From Setoptus koraiensis (Eukaryota; Animalia; Arthropoda), in contig CM106585.1 of assembly GCA_048013815.1 (NCBI GenBank), forward strand, positions 9,796,001-9,860,000: 64,000 nt of DNA. The letters run 5' to 3'. The notes below the pieces were generated by a model. The model worked only from the letters and a program-made list of their open reading frames with translations. It made no database searches and had not been told where the DNA came from. Numbering within the stretch: position 1 is the first letter of the stretch; each line of letters opens with the position of its first letter. The translations under genes were made by a program, and so were the position numbers. Below, in pieces: positions 22,155 through 64,000 of the stretch.

Positions 22155-24155
22155 ATGATGAAGGACTACGACTACGAGATGAGCAGCCAGGCGCCCAGCA
22201 GCAACCTCAACTCTATTAATTCTAATACATGGCGCCAGCGGACATTTAAACGAAGCTGGCAACGCTTGCCCAGATCCTTCAAAATATATCTAATCATCGG
22301 ACTAATAGTAGTGGTGGCTATTCTCACATTCTCCACTAGCAAAATGCTTCCAGTTCTTGCCAGTAACCCACAAGCGGGCTTCCCGTTTATAGTTGCCACT
22401 AGATCCACTGGAACAGAGACAAATCTAATGTTTTCTACTAATCACAATCACCACCAACAGCCCATCCATTCATCGACCTGGACTCCCAATATGGCAGCCC
22501 CCATCGACAATCTAGCGCAACGCCAAGCCATGTCTGCTAGCAACAATCATCCTAATATACTGAGACACGACCAGGCCCCACAAACAATTAGAACTCCATC
22601 CACCAGATCGCTTCCCCCTACTGACACGGCCGCCGCTCATGTACTATTGGCCAGACCAAACTCGGCCCAGCACATCAACAACATTTTCTTTCCATCTTAC
22701 AACTCATCATCATCTACAAACAATGGAGCTCAACTAGCACCAGCTACAACCCATGACGACGCCAAAAACAAATTCAGACAAAACTTTATACGTGGCATGA
22801 TGAAACACGCATGGGACGGTTATGTAAAACACGCTTGGGGATACAATGAGGTCAAGCCTGTGTCGGGCGAAATCAATTATGAAAGTGTGTTCGGCTCGGA
22901 GAAAACGGGCGCCACCATTGTCGATGGCATCGACACACTATACATTATGGGCCTCATGGACGAGTACAAAATGGCCAGGGACTGGATAGAGCACAATCTA
23001 GATTTAGGAAAATACGATTTTGAAATGTCCGTCTTCGAAACAAACATACGCTACGTCGGCGGTCTACTTTCAATGTTTGCCATGACCAAGGACAAAATGT
23101 TTCTAGACAAGGCAGTGCAAGTTGCCAACAAACTATTGCCTGCCTTCAATACACCAAGTGGCGTACCCTATTCTAGTGTTAACTCGAGGACTGGCTATGC
23201 GACAAATCACGGATGGAGCTACGGTGCGGCTATTTTGTCAGAGTTTGGCACAATGCACTTGGAGTTTATGTATTTGTCGCACGTTACGGGAAATCCCGAA
23301 TATGCCAATCGAGTCCTAAAGGTACGCGATGTCATTAAGAGAGCGATTCCCCGATCTGACGGATTGTATAATAATTACATGAACACAGACTCAGGTCAAT
23401 GGTTAGTCAGTCCTGTTCATGTATCCATGGGAGCCTTAGGTGATAGCTTTTACGAATATTTAATCAAATCATATGTATATTCAGGTGATCGTGATACAGA
23501 CGGGTACAATTTGTACATAGAGGCCATTAGGGCCTTTGAGAACAAGTTAGTGTTTACATCAAGTCAGTCTAGGCTAGTGTATTTTGCCGAACTAAAGGGC
23601 ACATCTATTAATCACAAAATGGGCTCGCTTGCCTGCTTCTCTGGTGGCATGCTGGCCCTGGGTGCCACCAAATCCAACGATCCGCGCCGACACATGAAAC
23701 TAGCCGCGGACATAGCCAATACCTGCCACGAGTCTTGTGTGAGAACTAAATCGAAAATAGGACCCGAGACATTTGTCTTTAGTAACCAAGCAGAAGCCAT
23801 TGCCTTTGGACCACAGGAGAAATATTACATACTCAGACCAGAGATACTTGAGACTTATTTCTATTTATGGCGTTACACCCACGATCCCAAATATCGCGAA
23901 TGGGCATGGGATTTTGCTCAAGCTATTGAGAAATATTGTAAATCCGAGGCGGGCTACTCTGGTTTGCGCAACGTTTATGACCCATCATCCAACAACAAGG
24001 ACGACGTTCAGCAAAGCTTCTTCCTAGCCGAAGTGCTCAAATATTTGTACTTGATATTTTCTGATGACAATTTAATCAATTTGAACGATTGGGTTCTAAA
24101 CACGGAGGCTCATCCATTGCCAATCATGAAAAACATCTCCTTTCATCCGCAGTGA
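22155..24155 (+). CDS. MAN1A: Mannosyl-oligosaccharide 1,2-alpha-mannosidase (Golgi class I, GH47), intronless, 666 aa
   Basis: Type II anchor; GH47 motifs MMKHAWDGY..AWG.NE, VFETNIRYVGGLL, LSEFGTMHLEF, GALGDSFYEYL, YILRPE..ET, QQSFFLAE.LKYLYL, NTEAHP. Confidence 0.97.
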   Translation: MMKDYDYEMSSQAPSSNLNSINSNTWRQRTFKRSWQRLPRSFKIYLIIGLIVVVAILTFSTSKMLPVLASNPQAGFPFIVATRSTGTETNLMFSTNHNHHQQPIHSSTWTPNMAAPIDNLAQRQAMSASNNHPNILRHDQAPQTIRTPSTRSLPPTDTAAAHVLLARPNSAQHINNIFFPSYNSSSSTNNGAQLAPATTHDDAKNKFRQNFIRGMMKHAWDGYVKHAWGYNEVKPVSGEINYESVFGSEKTGATIVDGIDTLYIMGLMDEYKMARDWIEHNLDLGKYDFEMSVFETNIRYVGGLLSMFAMTKDKMFLDKAVQVANKLLPAFNTPSGVPYSSVNSRTGYATNHGWSYGAAILSEFGTMHLEFMYLSHVTGNPEYANRVLKVRDVIKRAIPRSDGLYNNYMNTDSGQWLVSPVHVSMGALGDSFYEYLIKSYVYSGDRDTDGYNLYIEAIRAFENKLVFTSSQSRLVYFAELKGTSINHKMGSLACFSGGMLALGATKSNDPRRHMKLAADIANTCHESCVRTKSKIGPETFVFSNQAEAIAFGPQEKYYILRPEILETYFYLWRYTHDPKYREWAWDFAQAIEKYCKSEAGYSGLRNVYDPSSNNKDDVQQSFFLAEVLKYLYLIFSDDNLINLNDWVLNTEAHPLPIMKNISFHPQ

Positions 24156-37279: not shown

Positions 37280-39250
37280 ATGTCCCGACAGACTAGTTAC
37301 CTGGAAGAAGATAGTGCATTGGGCCAGCCCCAAATGGGGCTCCCCGATGAGTCGGCAAAGCGAGCACCGACGCCAAAGAAGATTACGCATCGCTCACAGT
37401 CATCGCCGTCGTCGTTGATAACACAAAAGTTTGGCCTCAGGCCCACACCTTCGCCACCCAGACTAATTATAGATCATCAAACGGGCGACATTATAGAAAG
37501 CTATCCATCTTCATATAGCCCGGCTCCGTACGGCCAGATACAAAGCAATCACACTGCCTACTTGAACAATAATAGGCAAGCCGCGGCTATAGAAGAAGGG
37601 GACCAATTGTTGGCCGACGGGCAACAAGATCGAGCGCCAATAACAATTGATTATCAGTCCATATTGAACACACTACCGTCGCCATCACAACAAGACCTGT
37701 CCAGTGCACATCAATACAACAATCCATATGATCCGTCAGTGAATCATTTTGTTGTAGGTGGCAATGAGATAATTGGCTCCGATGGCCAGCTGAGACGACA
37801 ATATGGCGTGGATCAATTGAGTAGGTCGCCGTCGCCATCGCCATCGCCAAACAACACCACTAACGATATTGATAACAATTATGATGAAGATAAACGAACT
37901 AAAAGAAGAAGACAACAGCAATTACATGGTAGCTCAAAGAATAGCATTAGTGATAGATTGCATCCTATATTGTCCAGAGAACAACAGAGTCAATTATCTG
38001 ATACGGACAATACAATAGCCATTGTTACATCGCCTTCGCCAACGCCAGACGGTCATCGCAACAGCAACAATGTCAATTCGAATTTCATGAATGACGACGG
38101 GGGCTATAGCGACGACGATAGAACTACCTTTATGATTACACCAAACAAAATACATGCAAAAATGGCCAGATCAACCACCACATCCATGATGCGACGCCAT
38201 CAAATGAATTCAATGGGTCGCTTTGGTCCATCTGCACAACACCATTTACTTAATTTGACGCCAGAGCAACGCCTGCAACGATCTAGACAGCGTTCGCCAT
38301 CGCCAAATATTGAAGATTTTAAACTATACGACATCTGGTATAATTTGCGAATATTATTAATTCTATTAATATCAGTATTGGCAATATATCTAGTATTTGC
38401 CTATTTAATAGAGGACTGTATATTATATCGTCCAACTCATTCGTATATATCAGTATTTATATCTGGTTTAAATATAATATGTGTGTTAATGTTTACATTA
38501 TTTTGGTATTTTACAAGTGTAACTAGGACATTATATTCAAATTTATCATCGTCGGCATTTATTATAAGCATATACTCAATATTAACAGTAGTCAATCTAT
38601 CGATAGCCATAGTATTGTTTTTAATAAATTCGTGTCACTTTCAAAAATTAGTCAATACACAATCATCGTCAGCATTGTTACAATTATCGCCGCCATCGTT
38701 AATTGTAGGAGGTCCACAAGCATCGCCAACTTCATCTCAACAACACCATCACAATCAACAACAACAGCAACAACAATCTAACCAACAGCAAGCCACCGAT
38801 CCATTAGCGGCTAATGAACCATTTGCACCGACAGAGAATGATCCATTCAATGGTGGTGGGGGCGGCAACGAACCATTGGCATTGAAGTTACAAGCGAATC
38901 ACAACGATTTCGACACAATTCTTTTAGAGAGATTAGAGCTACTATCCACAAATAAACAACATCCGAATGATGGCCAGCATTTGCTCAAGCGTCACCTAGA
39001 CAACATGGGTGCCGATGTAGTAAATCAGCCTAACAAGCCGCCACTTATATCGCCATGGGAGGCCGCCTGGGATTACATGAGAGACAATTTCAATGATTTC
39101 AGACGGGCCTTCTATAGGTTCCTCATGAAATATGATCTGAAATTTATAGGTGCCCTACACGCAATCAATTCCATGTGCTTGCAATATTGTGCCATGCGAG
39201 TGGCCGTTATTAGAAGCCATTTTTGTTCGCCAATACCCGTTTACATTTAA
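37280..39250 (+). CDS. Orphan four-pass membrane protein with a long Ser/Pro-rich disordered N-terminus, 656 aa
   Basis: Long ATG ORF; hydrophobic segments LRILLILLISVLAIYLVFAYLI, YISVFISGLNIICVLMFTLFWYF, AFIISIYSILTVVNLSIAIVLFLI and LKFIGALHAINSMCLQYCAM; no family recognised. Confidence 0.85.
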   Translation: MSRQTSYLEEDSALGQPQMGLPDESAKRAPTPKKITHRSQSSPSSLITQKFGLRPTPSPPRLIIDHQTGDIIESYPSSYSPAPYGQIQSNHTAYLNNNRQAAAIEEGDQLLADGQQDRAPITIDYQSILNTLPSPSQQDLSSAHQYNNPYDPSVNHFVVGGNEIIGSDGQLRRQYGVDQLSRSPSPSPSPNNTTNDIDNNYDEDKRTKRRRQQQLHGSSKNSISDRLHPILSREQQSQLSDTDNTIAIVTSPSPTPDGHRNSNNVNSNFMNDDGGYSDDDRTTFMITPNKIHAKMARSTTTSMMRRHQMNSMGRFGPSAQHHLLNLTPEQRLQRSRQRSPSPNIEDFKLYDIWYNLRILLILLISVLAIYLVFAYLIEDCILYRPTHSYISVFISGLNIICVLMFTLFWYFTSVTRTLYSNLSSSAFIISIYSILTVVNLSIAIVLFLINSCHFQKLVNTQSSSALLQLSPPSLIVGGPQASPTSSQQHHHNQQQQQQQSNQQQATDPLAANEPFAPTENDPFNGGGGGNEPLALKLQANHNDFDTILLERLELLSTNKQHPNDGQHLLKRHLDNMGADVVNQPNKPPLISPWEAAWDYMRDNFNDFRRAFYRFLMKYDLKFIGALHAINSMCLQYCAMRVAVIRSHFCSPIPVYI

Positions 39251-45699: not shown

Positions 45700-47458
45700 G
45701 CTCTCGGCTTATTTAAGACTCGGTGCTGCCAACACTGGGCTGGTGATTATGGAAGTCATTGCTGAAGAACACTCTCAGTGTATGCTTCACAACAAATTTG
45801 TCAACCAGCCGTGCCATTTTTGTCGAATTTTATTTGCATCGATAAACGCATAAACTAGCCCGAGAATTCAAGTGACTCAATCTGTAGAGTTGACAGGTTT
45901 ACCGAGGCACTCTGTGGTCAGTTACGCATTTCAGTGTGTTGACAGCGGCCTTTGGTCAGTCGTTGCCGAACCAAACATGAGTGCACCAGAAAAACCTCAA
46001 ACTGTTATGCGGATTCCCCGGTGCTTGCGTGTCCAAGTTCGCCTCGGTCCTCACAGGGACTTTGATTTCATATATTGTTGCACACTCCACGGACGAAGTT
46101 CTGCGAAATCAACGATGAACACGCATGCAGGCCAGCATTCAATTTTATCGATCGACGTGTGCACTAAAATATTTGAAAGATTTTCAACGTTTGAGAGAAT
46201 TCTACCCCGATCAGCAGAATGTATTAGCGATTGTAAGCGGTGACAACTTTCGACGTCCAGCGAATTGTAGCTTGAGACTCGAGCGGATTATCCCTTGAAA
46301 GTTTCAAGTTGAAACGGATACAAAGTCAGGCTACACAATGCTCCGTCTGGAAACAAGTGATCTCTTTGGCTGTGGCTCTAAAAGCGTCTCACCACTCCAT
46401 GTACCAGACGGACACGTTTGACGATGTCCGGACTCCGGAGCCAGAGCGAATTGTCGGGTTACAGGCTCGTCCAGCCAGAGGCCTGCAAACTGTGGTCGCC
46501 ATGTGTCGCCAGTGGCTATTATTGTGCTCTTGTTGTTGCCAATTAGAGTTGGCGACTTGTCGCTTTGAAACTCGCGCTAGCTTTGGCCCTACTATTCTTT
46601 TGTCCACTTTATGTAAGCGCACAATCATCATTTATATTATGCAGCACACAGCATTTACAGTACTGGGTGTTGCAATCAACTATTGCTCTTTGAACTGTTT
46701 ACGCTGCGCTGCATTATGTACAGAGTGTGTATTCTCACGTGAATATCACCATCCCATTGCAGATGTACAGATGTGTGCATGCTTGGTAGGCTTGCAAACG
46801 CGGCATATTCACGCCGGAGCCGTTGCACAAAGATTTGGCACAGTGTGTGTTTTTGTGCGTAACTGGTTGAGTGCAACACACTAGACAAGACTTGTTGTTT
46901 ATTGCACATTGTAAAAGTTATACGAGCACGCACACGTCTAGGCACGCACACATGCGTACTAGTGATACTGGCGATTGTACAGCTCACACTCACAGACGAG
47001 CGTATATACAGTATTTATACGCCCATGCCTACAGTCGCCTATTCACTTCTCTTCGTCGGATTTTTTCACACACATTTATCGCTCAACAAAATATTTTTTT
47101 TTGTTTTCATTAAATCAGATTGGACAAATACGCAGCCACTAGCTTCTGGAATATCCACCACACACTTACCCTAATTACGTTATCTCAACCTTCGCCAACA
47201 TGAGTGGGCTATCCGACGAAGACAGGAAGGAATTATTGGCCCTCATATTGGGATTCCTGCAGCAATCTTTAAATGATTTTCCCATTGGTATGACGCTTCG
47301 CGATTTTGAGCGAAACTTTCCAGAAAAATGCGATGAACCCGAAGATTGGTACACGCGCTACAATTGTAAAAACGCTGTCGAGGCCCTGCGAACGGTGCCA
47401 GAAGTTGCCAAGCTAACCGTGGGCTATGGAAATCAATTGAAAATTGAGTTAAATACTG
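45700..47458. repeat. Left arm of a large imperfect inverted duplication (partner ~49776-51120)
   Basis: 45784-45924 is identical to the reverse complement of 50891-51031 (141/141). 45925-46370 aligns with 50470-50890, 46900-47110 aligns loosely with 50120-50470, and 47113-47458 aligns with 49776-50120. Confidence 0.95.
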
Positions 47459-49578
47459 CCAGTAAACTACATGACACTCATCTCACCGACATGGTCAAAG
47501 GCCAAAAGGGCAAATCAAAAAAGAGAGCACCCCGAGGTCGACCCTTCTATCCCTGTTCTTTTGGCAACAGGAGACCACCGCAAGGACCATTTAACAGCAG
47601 AAGACCCCCCATGCCGGCGGCATACAATAGCAGGAGACCCACGCCAACATCGAGCGTCAACAGTGCCAATAGATCCACCCAACAGCAAGCCGCCAGCGCA
47701 AACAAATCTGCACCAGAATATTTCAGACCCAAGAATACGCCAGAAGCTCCGAGTATAAGGTCCGCTCCAGAACCGTTCAAACCGAAACCTACGCAAGAGG
47801 CTGCCCCAAGTCACTGGTCTACGCCGCCGGCTTCAAGCACAAAAAACGCGCCAGAAATCGCCAATACGAAACCCGCGCCAGAAGCCGCTGGCGCAAAACC
47901 GGCGCCGGCCTTCAGCACTAAATCCAATCAAGCATTGACCTCAGCACATGCAAGTGCGCATTCACAGATTAAACCGAGCAAATTCGTTTCCGAAAACAGT
48001 ATACGACGCGAAGAGACAACAAATATCCCCAAAAAACCTGCTCCGAAAGCCAGTGTTCAACACAAAGAGTGGCTCAGACAAAAAATAGTTGACTTACTTA
48101 CGCGAATTTCGTCAGAAATAAAGTTAATATTCCTGCCCACCATTTTTCGAACGGAATACGAGGAAACTTTAGATGCCACTGAATACGGCTACTCGCGCAT
48201 TATAGCTTTATTTCAGGACCCTATTCTGAGCAAGGATATTGAAATCAATCACAAGCATCCTTACACCACCATTAGTTCAAGATTGAAATCGAGGCCGGAC
48301 GGAAAAGAGAATAGGATCAACGGATCATCAGCGAATTCAACTAAAACATTTTTATCATCCAACCATCACGAGTCTCTTGATAGTTTATCTCAAGACACTG
48401 GAATAGAATCACCTTTTGAGGCTATTGATCCATTCAACCTGAAAAGTATGCAGCAAAGCCTACAGAAATCTTCTGTTCCTATCAAGGAAAAGAAGAAAAA
48501 CATCATCCCTATTGATGATGAAATTAAGTACAAAACCTTCCGAATGATCATGACCAGTGACACTCCATTAGAAATCGATAACTGGCAAAATAAGTTTGAA
48601 TATGAAACCAAGCTCAACATAAGAGTGAGCTACTATGGCTTCACTAATTGTGAAGACTTCTTCAAAGAGTTGGTCAAAGATATGCCCATCAAAATTGAGA
48701 GAAATAACGAAGGCCGCTCGATCGCTTCTTTGACATCCCCAGACGATTTAAAATTATGGTTATACGCTAAAATGGCCAAAAATGAATATAAATCAATTTA
48801 TGTTTTAAGTGATAAGTATGAATTGATAGCAAATCCCAAAGATCGATTCACTTTCAGGAGAATTGGACAGGAAATGTTGGATTCAGGTTACTATCCGGTA
48901 GCATTATGTTCAGCGAAGAATCCTTCTCATATCTGGTTGAAAATGCATAATGAACGATTCTACGAGGATCTTAGTTTCATAGAAACTACAATGTGCGCAT
49001 ACCAAGATTATACCGATTATAATGCTAAAACTAAGTCCTCCATGTTACCAGGTTTGCCTATATTCTTTTTTAGACAAGGACTACCATGCTCCGTTTATGA
49101 CCAGCACGTCAACAAGTGGTGCCGTGCTATAATCGTGTCCATCGTGGGATCTGTACCACAGACTAATCAAGAAATCGACAATCTCAAAGTGAATCTTTTA
49201 CTAGTGGACTACGGTTTAGAAAGAAAAAATATACCAGTGAAACAAATACATTGCCTTCTCAAAGACCATATGAGAACACCAATCGTTCCAATCCGGTGCC
49301 ATCTAGACGGTGTAAGGCCCGTATTTGATGAGCAAAGTGATGTTCCAGGCGAGTGGAGTGGAAAAGCAAAAGTTATTCTACAGGAATACGTCAACCCTCC
49401 GTCCATACTAGCTTGTAAATTTATCAACGAAAAGAACGACCAAGATGGAACTTCAAATGATACTCATTTACCGGTAACTAGTTGGGGAGTGGAACTATGT
49501 GATACCCGTGGTGACGAGGATTGTTTCCTCCATTCTTCATTGATTGAGGCTGGATTAGCTGAAAGTATTAATCACTAA
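47200..49578 (+). CDS. TDRD5: TDRD5/tejas-like piRNA-pathway protein (three LOTUS domains plus one extended Tudor), intronless, 792 aa
   Basis: LOTUS-like units at the N-terminus (..GMTLRDFE..C.NAVEAL..VPEV), at LRQKIVDLL..EYGYSRIIALF and at IKYK..SYYGFTNCEDFF; Tudor-SN region HIWLKM..KWCRAII..LVDYG..PIRCHLDGVRP..WS. Confidence 0.8.
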   Translation: MSGLSDEDRKELLALILGFLQQSLNDFPIGMTLRDFERNFPEKCDEPEDWYTRYNCKNAVEALRTVPEVAKLTVGYGNQLKIELNTASKLHDTHLTDMVKGQKGKSKKRAPRGRPFYPCSFGNRRPPQGPFNSRRPPMPAAYNSRRPTPTSSVNSANRSTQQQAASANKSAPEYFRPKNTPEAPSIRSAPEPFKPKPTQEAAPSHWSTPPASSTKNAPEIANTKPAPEAAGAKPAPAFSTKSNQALTSAHASAHSQIKPSKFVSENSIRREETTNIPKKPAPKASVQHKEWLRQKIVDLLTRISSEIKLIFLPTIFRTEYEETLDATEYGYSRIIALFQDPILSKDIEINHKHPYTTISSRLKSRPDGKENRINGSSANSTKTFLSSNHHESLDSLSQDTGIESPFEAIDPFNLKSMQQSLQKSSVPIKEKKKNIIPIDDEIKYKTFRMIMTSDTPLEIDNWQNKFEYETKLNIRVSYYGFTNCEDFFKELVKDMPIKIERNNEGRSIASLTSPDDLKLWLYAKMAKNEYKSIYVLSDKYELIANPKDRFTFRRIGQEMLDSGYYPVALCSAKNPSHIWLKMHNERFYEDLSFIETTMCAYQDYTDYNAKTKSSMLPGLPIFFFRQGLPCSVYDQHVNKWCRAIIVSIVGSVPQTNQEIDNLKVNLLLVDYGLERKNIPVKQIHCLLKDHMRTPIVPIRCHLDGVRPVFDEQSDVPGEWSGKAKVILQEYVNPPSILACKFINEKNDQDGTSNDTHLPVTSWGVELCDTRGDEDCFLHSSLIEAGLAESINH

Positions 49579-55861: not shown

Positions 55862-56376
55862 CGACTACCTTTGTCAAACCGTATCCCAGAATAACAAGCG
55901 CATTTCGTCGTTTGAGCTAACCATAATTAATAATGATAACTTGTTGATGATTGCTTGTGTGATCAACAGCATTGCTTGTGTGATAATAAATATGATGAAC
56001 GGTGAAAAATGCCATAGACTCACATGTATGCCGCCGGTATATGTCAAATTTAGTTGGTGTGATAACGAACGAACGAACAAAATGTTGCATAACATCACGT
56101 TAGAAAATGTCAAAATAATTGTTAATGATTGAGCTTAATCGATTAAATTTGTATCTTTATACTTACTATGTGAACATAAAAAGGACAGTAGATGATGAAG
56201 AGATAAAAGCAAATAAATTTAATCACATCATTTTTTTTATAGCTAGTTGACCCTTACACGACTAACCTATGTTCTCAATTATATCGTTTAATCTATATAC
56301 CTGTTGAATGTGCATCGGAAGCTGCCTGGCAAGCATCCAGTTGTCGATGATAGATGGACGCATGAAATTCTGATGG

Positions 56377-56384
56377 TATAAATA
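56377..56384 (+). promoter_or_regulatory. TATA box of the giant secreted-protein gene
   Basis: TATAAATA ~200 bp upstream of the signal-peptide ATG (56584); AATAAA at 62186-62191 downstream of the stop. Confidence 0.5.
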
Positions 56385-56583
56385 TGGAGAGCTGTCCAAC
56401 GATTAGACACAAGTTGGTTCTCTCGTAGTCTAGAGAGACAGACAGACAGATATGAGCAATAGCGCGAACAGCGGATTATAACTAGTGACTTTAAGTAGAA
56501 ATAACAGTTTATTTAGAGCGAAGAAAGACAGATTTATATTAGACGAGATAACAGCCAATTTGTATCAAACAGTAAACGTGAAG

Positions 56584-59500
56584 ATGCAGCCCCCAAGATG
56601 GACAGTATGCCTGATTCAGGCCGTGATTGTATTGTTCGTCATAGCCATGCAAACTCAGGCTGCTCCTCAGTTATTTGATAGCGTTATAAAGCCACTGTCA
56701 ACAATTGCCAGACAGCCAAGAGTGTTGGAGTTCAATTTCACTGCCTCATTTGGAGACGATCATCTAAAGAAACAAATCAGTGAGGTCAATAGTACTCGCA
56801 CTGTGAGTAGTCCAGTGGCCAATATTAATGGCGAACAAATCAGGGTACCCCAATTGACCGAGCAAAACGTTGATAGCAAGCGTGGTGCTGTGGTGAAAAC
56901 AATGGACGAGTTTGCTTCATCATTGAAAAGTGTCACCGACGAAGACGAATGCGATTGCGATCCAAAGGACAGCGCCAAAGGTGTGCGCGAAGTTATTGAT
57001 GCCACATCAAAACTCAGCCAAGACCTATTGCGATGTTTGCTGGATTCGGTGAGATCGCGAATTGGCCAACAAGAGGCCACACTTATTAGGGCTCTAGTCA
57101 AAGAATCAATGGATGCATTGTCACGTTCAGTGGACGGCATTTACGCAATTTGGAAGGACGATCAGAAGAACGAGCCCACTCAGGCCGTGCAAGCCATTGT
57201 TGACGGTATGATGTCTGTGTTGAATCAATTTTCGTCACGTCTCACAACAGCCTTGACTTCGAAACCAGAGAAAAGAATCTCAACAATCGCTTGGGTATTG
57301 GATGAAATGACAAATCTCGTCGCCAATACCTCAGCATCGCTGGCAAACGATCTAGACAAAGGCCTGAACGAAAAACAATTGGATCTAGTACTGAAACTGG
57401 CAATTGATCTTGCTCAGCCTCTCGCGTCACCGGTATTGGCAAGCTTCGTCAATGGTACAGCACGTATACCATTTATTAATGGTCAAATGTTGATCTTCAT
57501 CGAGGAAGCACAAAATATTAGCCGTGGCTGCCTGAATACCAAGTCGCTCCGCGTAAATCTACCATCGGCAATATTGAAATCACTAGCCAAAAGTTTGTAC
57601 TCAATCAAAATCAAGGTGGGTAGCACTGACGCAACAGCAGCATCAATTTCTCACAGGGCTGCCACAAGCAACTTCTTGTTTAGCTTGATACAGCAGGTCG
57701 AGGATATGATTCGTCAGACCAACTCACTTGAGAAGAGCCAAATAACACCCAAATGTCGCCAAATGGCCCGAGAGGGTGTGGCGAATTCAGTGGTCATAGT
57801 AGAGCAAGTGATTGCCAACGTGTTGCCGGAATTGAAAACAGGAAGCCAGAGTCAAGTGCAAGTGAGCCAAGGAAAGCTGGCTGGACAAATGGCGTTGGAT
57901 TTCGCTGGTATATTGCCAATTGTAAGCGATGATCTAACTCAGTTCAGTGGACGCGAAGAACGTCTGGCTAACATCACAATGTTGATCTATCAACAATTGG
58001 AGGTACTCAAACGTGTGGCCAAAAACGATCAAGCCATCAGCAAGAATTCTCTCGAGGGCACCAAGGCAACCATTCAATTATTGGTTGATGTAGCCAGATT
58101 GGAGGTGAGATACGTACAAATTGCCGTTGAACGTGTCCACCAATCGGACGAGCGAGGCTCGAGACTTCAGCTTATCAACAAGGTTGTCCGCGCCATTATT
58201 GCGTCAGTAACCAAATCGGGAATAACGGAAGTCAGTGCCGATAATACACCATTGACCAAAATGATTGGAGACATATCAGAGGCACTGAGCAAAACGATTG
58301 ATGGTATTAGCCAGAATACTCTCAAGGATAAACCTAGGAGTGCAGGTGACGTTCTCTTTGAGGTATTCTATTCAATGATGGAAACTGAACGTAAGCTCAT
58401 ATCTGACGCCCAAACTCCACCAAGAAGCGGCCTCAGTCAATCGGTGCCAACCGATGCCATATTTGGATTGGCCAATTCTATTAGAACAGCAGTGGATTGG
58501 TCCAACGCCTTGACCAGATCATCTGGATTAGAGCCTTCAATTCAGGACGCTCTCATTGATCTGATAATCAAGGTAGTGGTTAGAACTTCGGACAGTTTGA
58601 ATGGCAACGAGAAACAAAACAAAGATCTAGATTCCAGTTTAAGTGGCGATCTAAGTAGTGTCTTGGATGAATTGAAGAAGATCCAGCAACAGATTAAATC
58701 GTCATCAGGAACCAAGACAACAACACAAGCATACATAGATTACTATAGTTATGATGACTACTCGGACAAGACACCAACGAGTGGTCTAACAAACCTTGTC
58801 ATAGCCGCAAACAATGTAGACGAGATTCTTGCATACATTCTAGGATTCAACGTGAAATTGACGACTAGTGTAACACTCAGAAATTCAAAGACAATAGTAG
58901 ATGTGATAATAGTGCTTCTGGAGGATTGTAGTCGCACACCTCAAGTGAACGATGATGGATCAATAAGTTTGCCTTCGGGAGTGCTTACAACACCTAGACC
59001 AACACCTACAGAGGCACCAACGACCACAAGTGCACCAACAACCACAAAATCGCCATCAACCACGAGTGAACCAGGAGTGCCAAGTGAGCCAGGCAAGCCA
59101 GGTCACCCAGGTCACCCAGGTCGACCAGGACATCCTGGTACTGGTAGTCCATCAACAACTCCATCAAGCAGCGAATCAGAGCCAGGCAAGCCCGGTCATC
59201 CAGGGCACCCAGGTCATGGAAGCCCATCATCGACTCCATCGAGCAGCGGTGCTGAACCAGGAAAGCCAGGTGAGCCAGGCACGCCAGGTCGACCGGGTCA
59301 CCCGGGTCAACCAGAACACCCAGGTCATCCTGGTACTGGTAGCCCATCAACAACCCCGTCAAGCAGCGTTGCTGAACCCGGAGAGCCAGGCAAACCAGGT
59401 CACCCAGGCAGACCAGGACACCCAGGTCATGGTGGCCCATCAACCACTCCCTCAAGCCGCGGCGCTGAACCAGGTGAGCCAGGCAAGCCAGATCACCCGG

Positions 59501-61992
59501 GTCGACCAGGACACTCAGGTCATGGTGGCTCATCGACACCATCGAGAATTGGATCAGGCCCATCTGATGGCGTCCCGACCACTCCATCAAGCAGCGGATC
59601 AGAGCAAGGTCATCCAGGACACCCAGGTCATGGAAGCCCACTAACAACACCATCAAGCAGCGGTGCTGAACTAGGAGAGCCGGGTCACCCAGGCAAACCA
59701 GGACACCCTGGCCGCCCAGGACATCCAGGTTTACCAGGTCTTCCCGGCCTTGGTAGCGTTTTAACAACTCCATCGAGCACTGGATCGGAGTCAGGCCAGC
59801 CAGGTGAGCCAGGCAAACCAGGACACCCTGGCCACCCAGGTCTACCAGGTCTACCAGGTCTACCAGGTTTCCCTGGTCTTCCCGGCCTTGGTAGCGTTTC
59901 AACAACTCCATCGAGCAGCGGTGCTGAACTAGGCCAGCCAGGTGAGCCAGGCAAACCAGGACATCCAGGTAGACCGGGACACCCAGGTCACCCAGGTACT
60001 GGTAGCCCATCAACAACTCCGTCGAGCAGCGGATCAGAGCCAGGAGAGCCAGGCAAGCCCGGTCACCCAGGCAGACCAGGACACCCTGGCCGCCCAGGAC
60101 ATCCAGGTTTACCAGGTCTTCCAGGCCTTGGTAGCGTTTCAACAACTCCATCGAGCACTGGATCGGAGTCAGGACCAGGACACCCAGGTCTACCAGGTCT
60201 ACCAGGTTTCCCTGGTCTTCCCGGCCTTGGTAGCGTTTCAACAACTCCATCGAGCAGCGGTGCTGAACTAGGCCAGCCAGGTGAGCCAGGCAAACCAGGA
60301 CATCCAGGTAGACCGGGACACCCAGGTCACCCAGGTACTGGTAGCCCATCAACAACTCCGTCGAGCAGCGGATCAGAGCCAGGAGAGCCAGGCAAGCCCG
60401 GTCACCCAGGCAGACCAGGACACCCTGGCCGCCCAGGACATCCAGGTTTACCAGGTCTTCCCGGCCTTGGTAGCGTTTCAGCAACTCCATCGAGCACTGG
60501 ATCGGAGTCAGGCCAGCCAGGTGAGCCAGGCAAACCAGGACACCCTGGCCACCCAGGTCTACCAGGTCTACCAGGTTTCTCTGGTCTTCCCGGCCTTGGT
60601 AGCGTTTCAACAACTCCATCGAGCAGCGGTGCTGAACTAGGCCAGCCAGGTGAGCCAGGCAAACCAGGACATCCAGGTAGACCGGGACACCCAGGTCACC
60701 CAGGTACTGGTAGCCCATCAACAACTCCGTCGAGCAGCGGTGCTGAACCCGGAGAGCCAGGCAAGCCTGGTCATCCAGGACACCCAGGTCATGGAAGCCC
60801 ATCAACAACTCCATCGAGCAGCGGATCAGAGCCAGGAGAGCCAGGCAAGCCCGGTCACCCAGGCAGACCAGGACACCCAGGACATCCAGGTTTCCCAGGT
60901 CTCCCCGGTCTTGGTAGCGTTTCAACAACTCCTTCAAGCAGCGGTGCTGAACCAGGACGGCCAGGTCACCCAGGTCGTCCAGGACATCCAGGTTTACCAG
61001 GTTTCCCCGGCCTTGGTAGCGTTCCAACAACTCCATCAAGCGGCGCGTCAGAACCTGGCGAGCCAGGTCGCCCAGGCAGACCAGGGCACCCTGGTTCCGG
61101 TGGAGTGTCAACGACGCCATCGAGCAGAGGATCTGAGTCAGGCCACCAAGGACACCCAGGTCTACCAGGTTTCCCCAGTCTTCCTGGTCTCGGTAGTGTT
61201 ATAACAACTCCATCAAGCAGCGGATCGGAACCAAGCGAGCCAGGCCAGCCAGGAAAACCAGGTCACCCCGGTCGACCAGGACATCCAGGTATACCAGGTC
61301 TACCTGGTCTACCAGGTTTCCCCAGTCTTCCTGGTCTTGGTAGCGTTTCAACAACTCCATCTAGTGAAACGACACACTCTAGCCATCCCAATCATGGTTT
61401 ACCAACAACATATCCTGTAGGTGTTCCCATTGGTCACCAAAGTAGGGGAGAAAGTACTACTACATCATCGCCGAAGAATGGCGATGATGTCGAATGTACC
61501 AAAATCCCATTAGGACATGGCCCAGTTAGTTTACCCGGCCATCCAATTCATCTACCAATCCCAACAGTATGTATTGCCAAAGGAAAGACGCCAACAACAA
61601 CGACACCGGCTTCATCTACAAACCAACAGCAGAGATCAACTACAGTGTCCCCACCAACTGATGGACCTAAGTCCAGTGCACCTAGTCAAAGTATTGGAGG
61701 TACAACTGAACAGCCGAAACGATCTCCACATCAGTCGTGTCCATTGGTACCTGTTGATGACAACGATGAACTGGATTCGGATGATATTAAGACCTTCGAA
61801 CACGAGTCACACTCTCCCTCTGAAAGATTGAATGAACTAAAGGAGCTCCTTCGATCGCTTGTGGCTTCATCATCTGGCGTTGTATGTCACCAGACGGATG
61901 AATCCAAGCTCAAACGTCAAGAAGAACTATTATATGCCGACGTGCTCAAATATTTGACTCGTCGTCAGCTAAAGACATGCTCTAAAGCTTGA
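56584..61992 (+). CDS. Giant secreted protein, 1802 aa: signal peptide, ~800-aa helical domain, interrupted collagen-like (Gly-X-Pro)n/Ser-Thr repeat core, Cys-containing C-terminal domain
   Basis: 5.4-kb uninterrupted ORF; [26 protein letters not shown] signal peptide (the ORF track's GTG start at 56485 is unlikely); ~22 modules such as [36 protein letters not shown]. Confidence 0.92.
59060..61370 (+). repeat. Coding tandem repeat array (~22 modules; three-module super-repeat of 339-369 bp)
   Basis: Recurrent ccaggt/ccagga codons and caacaactcc(a/g)tcgagcagc linkers; near-identical blocks start at ~59930, ~60270 and ~60640. Confidence 0.95.
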
Positions 61993-64000
61993 GGGGGCCG
62001 ATAAGTGGTTACAATTCATGATAACTTTTCTTATGAATTCAAAACTTGTTAGATCTACTACTGCTATGAGCATTGAGAAAAGTTAATATTCTTCTATCAT
62101 CTATGATATGATTCCAGACTGTTGATGCAGTTTATAAGTGATGATGAACCTATACAAGCTGCATTTTTTAATTCACTACTACCGCAATAAATCAATTAAA
62201 TTATAGCAATGAGTCATTGGGGAATTATTTATAATTATTTTCGGGCCAACAAAAACAGAGGCAACTTCGGCAAAGATGGTAGTATTTTCCATTGCTGCAT
62301 AGAGCACTAAATCTAATCTGCTAAGATTTACTCCAGCACACAAATACAGTTTACAGTTGTTCTTCTGCTCCTACTCGGCCAATCCAGGTGATTGTGTCGA
62401 GATCAACAGAAACTCCCAGCCTGACGATCCGTCTGAAGACGATAACAGCGATCTGACTGTCTAACTTTCAAAGTTTCAGTAGTCAACCGATTGCGAAAGT
62501 CCCTTAAGATCTGTTGCTTTATAAAACGGTAGAGATTTTGTGTAATTCAACCATCCTGCTGACGTGTGAAAGTAGTTGGCCAGCACGAATCGCCTCTAGC
62601 TGGAACCATGTAGAGCGCCCTTGGTCGAGCGAACGACGACAAGGACGAACGTCGAGGGGAACAGCCAAAAGTGTCGTTGTTGGACGATTTTGCCAGGATG
62701 GACTGAGGAAAATTTAAACAATGAACCATTAATCATGCGATAAGTCTTCAACCTATCGAAAGACATGAATAGTCTTAGTGAAATACAAAAGAAAATACGC
62801 CCTACGCTGTTTAGCGACAGTACATTGTATAATGAGCGGTGAAATTGAATCCGGCTCCGAATCAAAATCGTCAGCTCCTTGAGATAACTAATAAAATTCG
62901 TTTGGCGCCTAGGTAAACTCTTTGGGCATAATTTTTTCCTCAGGGAACATCCGACTTTTCCTGCTTCACAATCTAAATATTGCGCGCGCTTCTTCGGAAC
63001 TTTTATCGCATCGGCAACTTACTCTCCATTTTTGGTATCAACGTGGTGACACCTAGAATCGAGTCCGATGAACCAAAACACGTTCATCGCAAATTCTGTT
63101 TCTCTTTTGCTCATATTCATAGGTGATTAAAGATATACATCTGTCTTAAAATAACTGTAATATTGCGTGGATTCTTTCAGACTTGGCAGCGATCATTAGT
63201 TATCGTTGTCTTCCGCACTTGCTTTCACTTGCAAAAAGCAAGACAAAACATCTCAGTGATGATAACAACAGACAGTTGGAATATATCTATTCGAGGACAT
63301 TGATGTGTGATTCGCCAGTAAAATCACGTACAATCGGCGGAAGTTGTTATGAGGCTGACCCCAATAAGAGTAGGCACACGAAATCGAATAGGTTTGCGCT
63401 TGCTGCGGGAACAGGAGACACTTCATTCGCGCCTTTGCTCTGGCGATTCATCTCTCGTCGCTGAACGATGTCGATGCTTATCACAATCTTCCAATACTCG
63501 TAGCAACTCGATTTTGGGGAGCTCGTTTATTTGGATTGAGTCAGACATCGCAATGATCTCACTAGATACAATTGTCTTCCACGCTAGATTTCTCGAAATT
63601 CTTGTAGCAAAGAACAATCGGTGCGGCAGATCGGTGATGAAAACAAGAGACGATTGCTAACTATCGATCGAAGCACATTAATTGTCGATTAGGGAGGACA
63701 AACAGGCACGATTAGCAAAAATTGTTAAGGTTGTACCTCATTAAAACACAGACTGAATTGAATAGTTTGGCGCTTGCTATGGGAATAGTAGACACTTTCA
63801 TCGACACAGTGAATAAAATGCGAAAACAAAATCAAGTTCTCTCATTCGTGCCTTTGCTCTGATTCCTCGCGAGTCTTAATGACGTTCCCGAGTGCACTAT
63901 CTCCCGAGAGAGTTTTATGCAGAAGCAATCTGCCCCGAAAGGCGGGCGCATGCTCCCGCGCAGTGAGGCTCGATGCGTTCGGGATCTCGGTGAAAACTTA

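Follow-up and report, generated by a model that had tools for sequence, protein, structure and literature searches.

The 64,000-nucleotide (nt) stretch of the Setoptus koraiensis assembly GCA_048013815.1 analyzed here (contig CM106585.1, positions 9,796,001 to 9,860,000 of the forward strand; hereafter the window, to whose numbering all coordinates refer) contains a long gene for a putative secreted protein with a segmented, collagen-like repeat between two non-collagenous ends. A single open reading frame (ORF) on the + strand spans 56485..61992 in the program-made ORF list, running from the first ATG at 56584 to the stop at 61992, and predicts a product of 1,802 amino acids (aa) and ~185 kDa. 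The reading frame of 5,409 nt is interrupted by neither a stop codon nor a frameshift, even in ~2.2 kb of highly repetitive, slippage-prone DNA, and, judged from the sequence, the gene for the 1,802-aa protein is intact and real; a single-exon structure fits both the unbroken frame and the sharing of one frame by the N domain (the head) and the C tail. The start, the stop, the signal peptide, and the non-repetitive, amphipathic-helical N-terminal part described in a previous model-made reading of this DNA (the initial annotation) are all confirmed by the ORF list, hydropathy analysis, self-BLAST, and AlphaFold2 (AF2) modeling. The parts of the gene are the following.

56584..56664, + strand: signal peptide, aa 1-26/27, with R5, a hydrophobic core at 8-22, and predicted cleavage between TQA and A
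56665..58983, + strand: N domain that defines the family, aa ~28-800, ~770 aa, with ~20 predicted amphipathic helices and 6 Cys
58984..59091, + strand: Pro/Thr-rich hinge, aa 801-836, read from the sequence; its counterpart 'TPRP' in a core-less relative (P0001, below) leads directly into the C tail
59092..61338, + strand: collagen-like core, aa 837-1585, with 21 Gly-X-Pro blocks (3-11 triplets) and 20 Ser/Thr/Pro linkers (13-14 aa)
59845..60708, + strand: three-module super-repeat within the core, 339-bp unit (modules M8-M10, M11-M13, then M14), from the module table and Tandem Repeats Finder
61339..61728, + strand: Ser/Thr/Pro/His-rich C-proximal region, aa 1586-1715, with Cys 1638 and 1663, read from the sequence
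61729..61992, + strand: conserved C tail, aa 1716-1802 and stop, in the order Cys1719, amphipathic helix, Cys1768, second helix, Cys1799, end

The core, which accounts for 41% of the protein and is devoid of Cys, consists of a leading block followed by 20 modules, each made up of a GS(P/V)STTPSS(S/T)G(A/S)E linker and then a Gly-X-Pro block. On these blocks the Pfam family Collagen (PF01391) scores 125.2 bits against a cut-off of 27.2 (expectation value (E) 8e-37, in 7 stretches), and no other family was found in Pfam with the full protein. Gly recurs at every third residue across 154 triplets with few point breaks (e.g., FPSLPG), and the Y position is occupied by Pro in 129 of them (84%), in agreement with the collagen-type placement of Pro in the initial annotation, whose repeat design also stands; its counts of ~22 modules and 2-10 triplets, on the other hand, are replaced by 21 blocks of 3-11 triplets. 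The X position is far more varied (H 52, L 29, R 18, K 16, E 14, Q 7, F 7, T 6, and Pro only 1), and within every block its residues follow one order, namely E or Q, then K, then alternating H and R, and finally L or F. This polarity is nearly perfect, with inversions in 2 of 328 pairs as compared with ~164 in shuffled blocks, and the linker type tracks the block that precedes it, GSP being found after blocks ending in His or Thr and GSV after those ending in LPGL. With 54 His residues in the core, the calculated net charge falls from +57 at pH 5 to +40 at pH 6, +11 at pH 7, and 0 at pH 8. In mucins, dense O-glycans are carried by tandem repeats rich in Pro, Thr, and Ser; the Ser/Thr-rich linkers of this protein are ~70% S/T/P in composition and make up 36% of the core, with a Pro/Thr-rich hinge and an S/T/P-rich C-proximal region on either side, but they are short, and a long Pro/Thr/Ser domain is absent. 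Since the length of 18 of the 20 modules is 1 modulo 3, the phase of Gly starts anew after every linker. Tandem Repeats Finder detected the array and, within it, the super-repeat with a period of 339, 2.0 copies, and 99% matches over 59845-60516, and this near identity (~99%) at the DNA level argues that the array has been remodeled by recent unequal exchange.

The signal peptide is the only part of the chain with a Kyte-Doolittle 19-aa mean above 1.6, with no other segment at transmembrane hydrophobicity, and the predicted protein, carrying a signal peptide and no membrane anchor, looks secreted. The N domain behind it is non-repetitive in self-BLAST and rich in S, L, V, T, A, and I; its Cys residues lie at positions 123, 125, 151, 316, 391, and 782, and an ECDC(D/N)P motif is conserved. 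AF2 predicts the domain to be all-helical, every element being a helix, and a significant hydrophobic moment is found in most of the predicted helices. The single-sequence model was poor (predicted local distance difference test score (pLDDT) 39.8); with an alignment of 6 sequences, pLDDT was 58 and the predicted template-modeling score 0.52, with values of ~70-90 pLDDT for aa 95-405. When the N-domain model was compared by Foldseek with the PDB, the AFDB clusters, and the ESM Atlas, no match exceeded a template-modeling score of 0.41 or fell below an E of 0.02, and the best Z scores from VIA-align, 10.2 for the THATCH domain of HIP1R, 9.6 for SPECT, and 8.8 for apolipophorin III, were all lower than the helical-bundle noise of ~13. 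The PDB profile search gave no match below E 0.39. As modeled, the head is an orphan domain of the all-alpha class and probably consists of helical bundles in series.

At the opposite end of the protein, the initial annotation had described a C-terminal domain with several Cys and a helix, which is borne out by five Cys residues (1638, 1663, 1719, 1768, and 1799) and the helices of the tail. The C region has no family match by Pfam or by C-region sequence search, and the segment aa 1586-1715 resembles mucin-like glycoproteins in composition alone. The three Cys and two helices of the tail align in position across the three loci whose sequence extends to the 3' end of the gene (this gene and the relatives P0001 and L002), although the sequence similarity of the tail is weak by itself (best E 0.003). 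The mature chain has 11 Cys in total, and because this number is odd, at least one Cys must be unpaired within a chain.

An exhaustive phmmer search with the N domain, covering 1.84 billion protein representatives, retrieved five relatives, all of them unnamed singletons from Logan or ENA assemblies and none in a named family, and four other loci carry the N domain at 27-61% identity. One of these is P0001 (locus L001), with an N-domain E of 6e-71 by phmmer and an alignment at 30% identity over 544 aa (E 8e-71). P0001 is an intact single ORF of 852 aa (L001:1198-3756), flanked on an intron-poor contig by an NFACT-R gene and by an integrin-alpha gene that is likewise a single ORF; in P0001 the C tail begins directly after the shared 'TPRP', so that head and tail are present without a collagen core. 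Both P0001 and a second relative, P0002, open with hydrophobic leaders equivalent to the signal peptide, and Cys123/125, Cys316, and Cys391 are conserved in the family alignment. In L002, a GC-rich metagenome scaffold, the N domain is 36-40% identical (tblastn), the C tail ends in ...ACWA followed by a stop codon, and the site of the core is occupied by ~1.1 kb of a different collagen-like text in shifting frames (GQPGKDGQPG, with HGNGPHG-type breaks). L003, with 61% N-domain identity (tblastn), and L004 are fragments. The segments L002:2026-6017 and L004:1-1073 have a GC content of ~59-60% and several frameshifts, which may represent assembly error, a pseudogene, or a deletion variant; L004 also skips from N-domain residue ~279 to ~595.

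Other searches added little to this set. A word-indexed search found no match with the N domain, P0002 alone with the N-domain alignment, and no match with the C region, and a scan of JGI metagenomes was equally negative. No match was found in a genome contig collection either, which is uninformative because that collection is prokaryotic. An exact look-up of the 1,802-aa protein returned no record, and the literature yielded no paper on a protein of this kind in mites, eriophyoid or otherwise, and none citing the sample accessions; the eLife paper on eriophyoid genomes mentions collagen, in its supplements, at the orthogroup level only. The view of the initial annotation that the terminal domains belong to no recognized family is thus upheld by Pfam, the exhaustive sequence search, the C-region search, the PDB profile search, and the fold searches, with no match of these domains to a known collagen or mucin family having orthologs across arthropods. 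On sequence grounds, the gene belongs to a small, unnamed, lineage-restricted family that is defined by a ~700-aa all-helical head and a ~85-aa Cys-helix-Cys-helix-Cys tail, and a Gly-X-Y insert at the hinge between them occurs in two divergent members, this gene and L002. Because P0001 has no core and L002 a different one, the core is regarded as a fast-evolving insert, and the head and the tail as the defining parts. This definition of the family, together with its core-less and other-core members, the shared C tail, the head model, and the register rule of the linkers, is new in the present analysis.

The surroundings of the gene contain candidate expression signals, overlapping ORFs, and ordinary neighbors, as follows.

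56377..56384, + strand: TATAAATA, candidate TATA box, 200 nt 5' of the ATG
56452..56481, + strand: upstream ORF of 9 codons, ATG...TAA, in the presumed 5' leader
62186..62191, + strand: AATAAA, candidate polyadenylation signal, ~195 nt 3' of the stop codon
59006..61120, - strand: antisense ORF of 704 aa, which translates into a low-complexity mirror image of the repeat
22155-24155: single long ORF, GH47 mannosidase
37280-39250: single long ORF of 656 aa
42866-44689: single long ORF, NonA/NOPS protein
47200-49578: single long ORF, Tudor protein

The 9-codon upstream ORF, which follows the TATA-like box and precedes the main ATG, is in frame with the main ORF and would be relevant only if transcription starts 5' of it. 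Further off-frame ORFs lie in the repeat on the + strand, at 59030-59644, 59942-60271, 60281-60640, and 60650-61204; these and the antisense ORF of 704 aa are, from their sequence, by-products of the stop-free CCAGGx periodicity and not genes. The neighbors in the window are ordinary animal genes present as long unbroken ORFs (GH47 mannosidase, an RRM protein of the NonA/NOPS type, a Tudor protein, UNC-93, TMEM9, and RAD51D), in addition to the 656-aa ORF, which has no match in Pfam. Because these genes are uninterrupted, the genome around the collagen-like gene is read as that of a compact, intron-poor metazoan in which most introns have been lost. Compact and intron-poor genomes of this kind have been described for eriophyoids (PMC7738191), and the genome in the window fits an eriophyoid-type mite.

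The design of the protein is worth comparing with those of the known collagen-based and silk-like systems. It shares with the PF01391 collagens, and especially with interrupted type IV collagen, a Gly at every third residue, a high Pro content, many interruptions, and large non-collagenous ends with Cys. Type IV collagen may contain as many as 25 interruptions, each no longer than 30 aa (PMC3790195). The present protein is distinguished from this and other collagens by its blocks of only 3-11 triplets, the confinement of Pro to Y, one stereotyped Ser/Thr-rich linker, the absence from the Pfam results of NC1/C4, C-propeptide, C1q, or any other known collagen end domain, and relatives on five unnamed contigs only. 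Pericardin or another insect interrupted collagen was considered and rejected, as the exhaustive N-domain search gave no insect or named protein and no C4 domain appeared in Pfam. A cuticle protein or peritrophin was likewise rejected, with no chitin-binding domain in Pfam.

The sawfly silk collagens (SfC A-C) are also arthropod collagens used outside the body and have orphan terminal domains; they are, however, small, run without interruption, have no hydroxyproline, and place Pro mainly in X and seldom in Y (PMC3790195), whereas in the present protein Pro is in Y at the frequency given above and the helix text is divided into 21 pieces, and phmmer found no sequence relation between them. The mussel byssal preCols resemble it in combining collagen text with many His residues in a secreted material protein, for which assembly depending on pH and metal is to be expected, but their His residues are located in terminal domains flanking one long collagen domain (PMC6477608, PMC5343498), in contrast to the 52 of 154 triplets with His as X here; they further differ in phylum, architecture, and sequence.

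The parallel with spidroins drawn in the initial annotation holds for the layout, that is, a non-repetitive N-terminal end, a long modular repeat evolving by unequal exchange, and a C-terminal end with Cys and helices. It does not extend to the terminal domains; spidroin terminal domains were rejected because neither Spidroin_N (PF16763) nor Spidroin_MaSp appeared in Pfam and the Atlas values of 0.50-0.57 compare with a noise of 0.8-0.9. The N domain of ~770 aa, which comprises ~43% of the protein and is ~6-fold larger than that of spidroins, is not a small control module. The analogy is further weakened by P0001, which keeps head and tail without the repeat core, opposite to a silk, whose defining part is the repeat.

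In nematode cuticle collagens and cnidarian minicollagens, which are small, each of the one to few blocks is bordered by a characteristic Cys cluster. Like the present protein, they have short Gly-X-Y blocks between Cys-bearing non-helical flanks, and they form disulfide networks in extracellular or extra-organismal structures. The present protein differs in its 21 blocks, its mucin-like linkers, and a core devoid of Cys.

Taking these features together, we tentatively favor the view that the gene encodes a secreted, multi-chain structural or adhesive protein, the His-rich blocks of which switch with pH or metal. In this predicted mechanism, the Gly-X-Pro blocks would form short rods of the collagen type, or at least of the polyproline-II type, and Pro in Y before the next Gly matches the context that collagen prolyl 4-hydroxylase recognizes in its substrates. 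The Ser/Thr-rich linkers may serve as flexible, probably O-glycosylated hinges between the rods, giving a multi-chain molecule resembling beads on a string, and the helices of the C tail, together with the odd Cys of the mature chain, may align the chains in register and link them covalently. From the polar blocks (acidic, Lys, His/Arg, and Leu/Phe), the 54 His, and the charge falling from +57 to 0 between pH 5 and 8, it is therefore proposed that the protein would be soluble in an acidic secretory compartment and, on reaching neutral pH, would condense by way of the hydrophobic ends of its blocks and the then uncharged His, possibly together with metal. By analogy, such a switch would follow the logic of the byssal preCols, in which His-dependent pH and metal switching is established (PMC6477608, PMC5343498), and the sawfly silk provides a precedent for an extracorporeal arthropod collagen (PMC3790195). 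The fiber, glue, egg-coat, or feeding-sheath roles offered as candidates in the initial annotation, and the O-glycosylation, hydroxylation, and metal cross-linking it suggested, stand as conjecture.

Several points weigh against this proposal. The initial annotation already judged the blocks too short for a classical collagen, and rightly so, as the longest run is 11 triplets and the long triple-helical domain of classical collagens (tens to hundreds of triplets) is not attained; because of this shortness (median ~7-8 triplets) and the near absence of Pro from X, the stability of a triple helix is uncertain from the sequence. Every linker breaks the Gly register, and none of the known trimerization or registration end domains (COLFI, C4/NC1, C1q, and similar) is found in Pfam at E up to 1. 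The regularity of the modules amounts to one design and not to 21 independent confirmations, since the modules are recent copies of one another, and P0001, being core-less, indicates a conserved family role that needs no collagen. Finally, no reads were obtained for the gene from four poly(A)/oligo-dT RNA runs when reads were mapped to 56200-58990, the segment ahead of the repeat core, which is no test of expression, as the presence of the organism in these runs is not shown. The four runs bear the species label of the sequencing run that best matches this DNA, the best-matching runs being small and of uncertain type, and the organism so labeled may be a host or some other species rather than the owner of this genome.

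These points can be read in other ways. The core may never be triple-helical but may instead be a disordered, polyproline-II or mucin-like region of a glue or coating that coacervates upon a change in pH, the Gly-X-Pro period serving extension or solubility only. His-rich squid-beak or jaw proteins are a model for such pH-triggered coacervating material. The short blocks and the single Pro among 154 X residues, the elastin-like appearance of the hydrophobic block ends, the large share of the core given to Ser/Thr-rich linkers, and the shift of Gly register at each of them all suit this alternative, and the pH-dependent swing in charge could drive coacervation without any helix. However, a Gly maintained at every third position over 154 triplets, with Pro-Gly in the context for hydroxylation, would be needless in a plain spacer or coacervate, and neither the high score of the collagen hidden Markov model nor the placement of a conserved, Cys-bearing helical tail where collagens have their registration domains is what it would lead one to expect; we regard it as rather doubtful. 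The retention of head and tail without a core in P0001 speaks in turn for the possibility that the working part is the helical N domain, together with the C tail, for example in surface coating or in lipid or ligand binding, and that the core is a lineage-specific stalk or spacer which projects or multimerizes the head, in the manner of collectins and scavenger receptors. This gene and L002 share no conserved core text, the largest and best-conserved part of the protein is the N domain, and its helices are amphipathic with up-down bundles (apolipophorin III and THATCH) as their sole structural neighbors, at noise level. Yet no fold or sequence match assigns the N domain any function, and an elaborate order from charge to hydrophobicity over 41% of the protein would be needless in a passive spacer, so that a head-centered function appears unlikely to us. 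Very improbable, in our estimate, is a silent or decaying gene, a recently expanded repeat locus that has gone out of use. In its favor are the lack of reads in the four RNA runs, the recovery of just 0.05-0.09 of the sampled words in two runs guessed to be RNA, which is a weak hint only, and the frameshifts in L002 and L004. Opposed to it are the 5,409-nt frame, intact through a slippage-prone repeat, the intact signal peptide, the conserved Cys, and the plausible TATA and polyadenylation signals, and the read result is no test of it either.

If, returning to the favored reading of a pH- or metal-switched secreted material, its most far-reaching form is considered, the protein would represent a new class of extracorporeal material that acariform mites build from a collagen. 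It would be a block copolymer of hydroxylated mini triple helices, each passing from acidic through basic and His-rich to hydrophobic, stored in soluble form at low pH and set by neutral pH or metal into a fiber or glue (e.g., a spermatophore stalk, egg cement, or attachment pad), and its origin, separate from those of spider silk, the collagen silk of sawflies, and mussel byssus, would lie in the insertion of repeats into an older head-and-tail secreted protein. We consider this extended form quite unlikely as a whole. Were the gene unexpressed, it would be merely a curiosity. If right, the favored reading would add a third independent arthropod route to a secreted collagen-type material, with an unusual and very regular design (His within triplets, Pro restricted to Y, a gradient from charge to hydrophobicity in each block, and glycan-type hinges) that would be of interest to biomaterials work. 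In mite biology, the protein is a candidate for one of the as yet unknown proteins used in spermatophores, in the attachment of eggs, or in other secretions. Within the family itself, the same head-and-tail protein is found without a core, with one core, and with another, and the birth and turnover of a collagen domain may thus be traceable within one small family.

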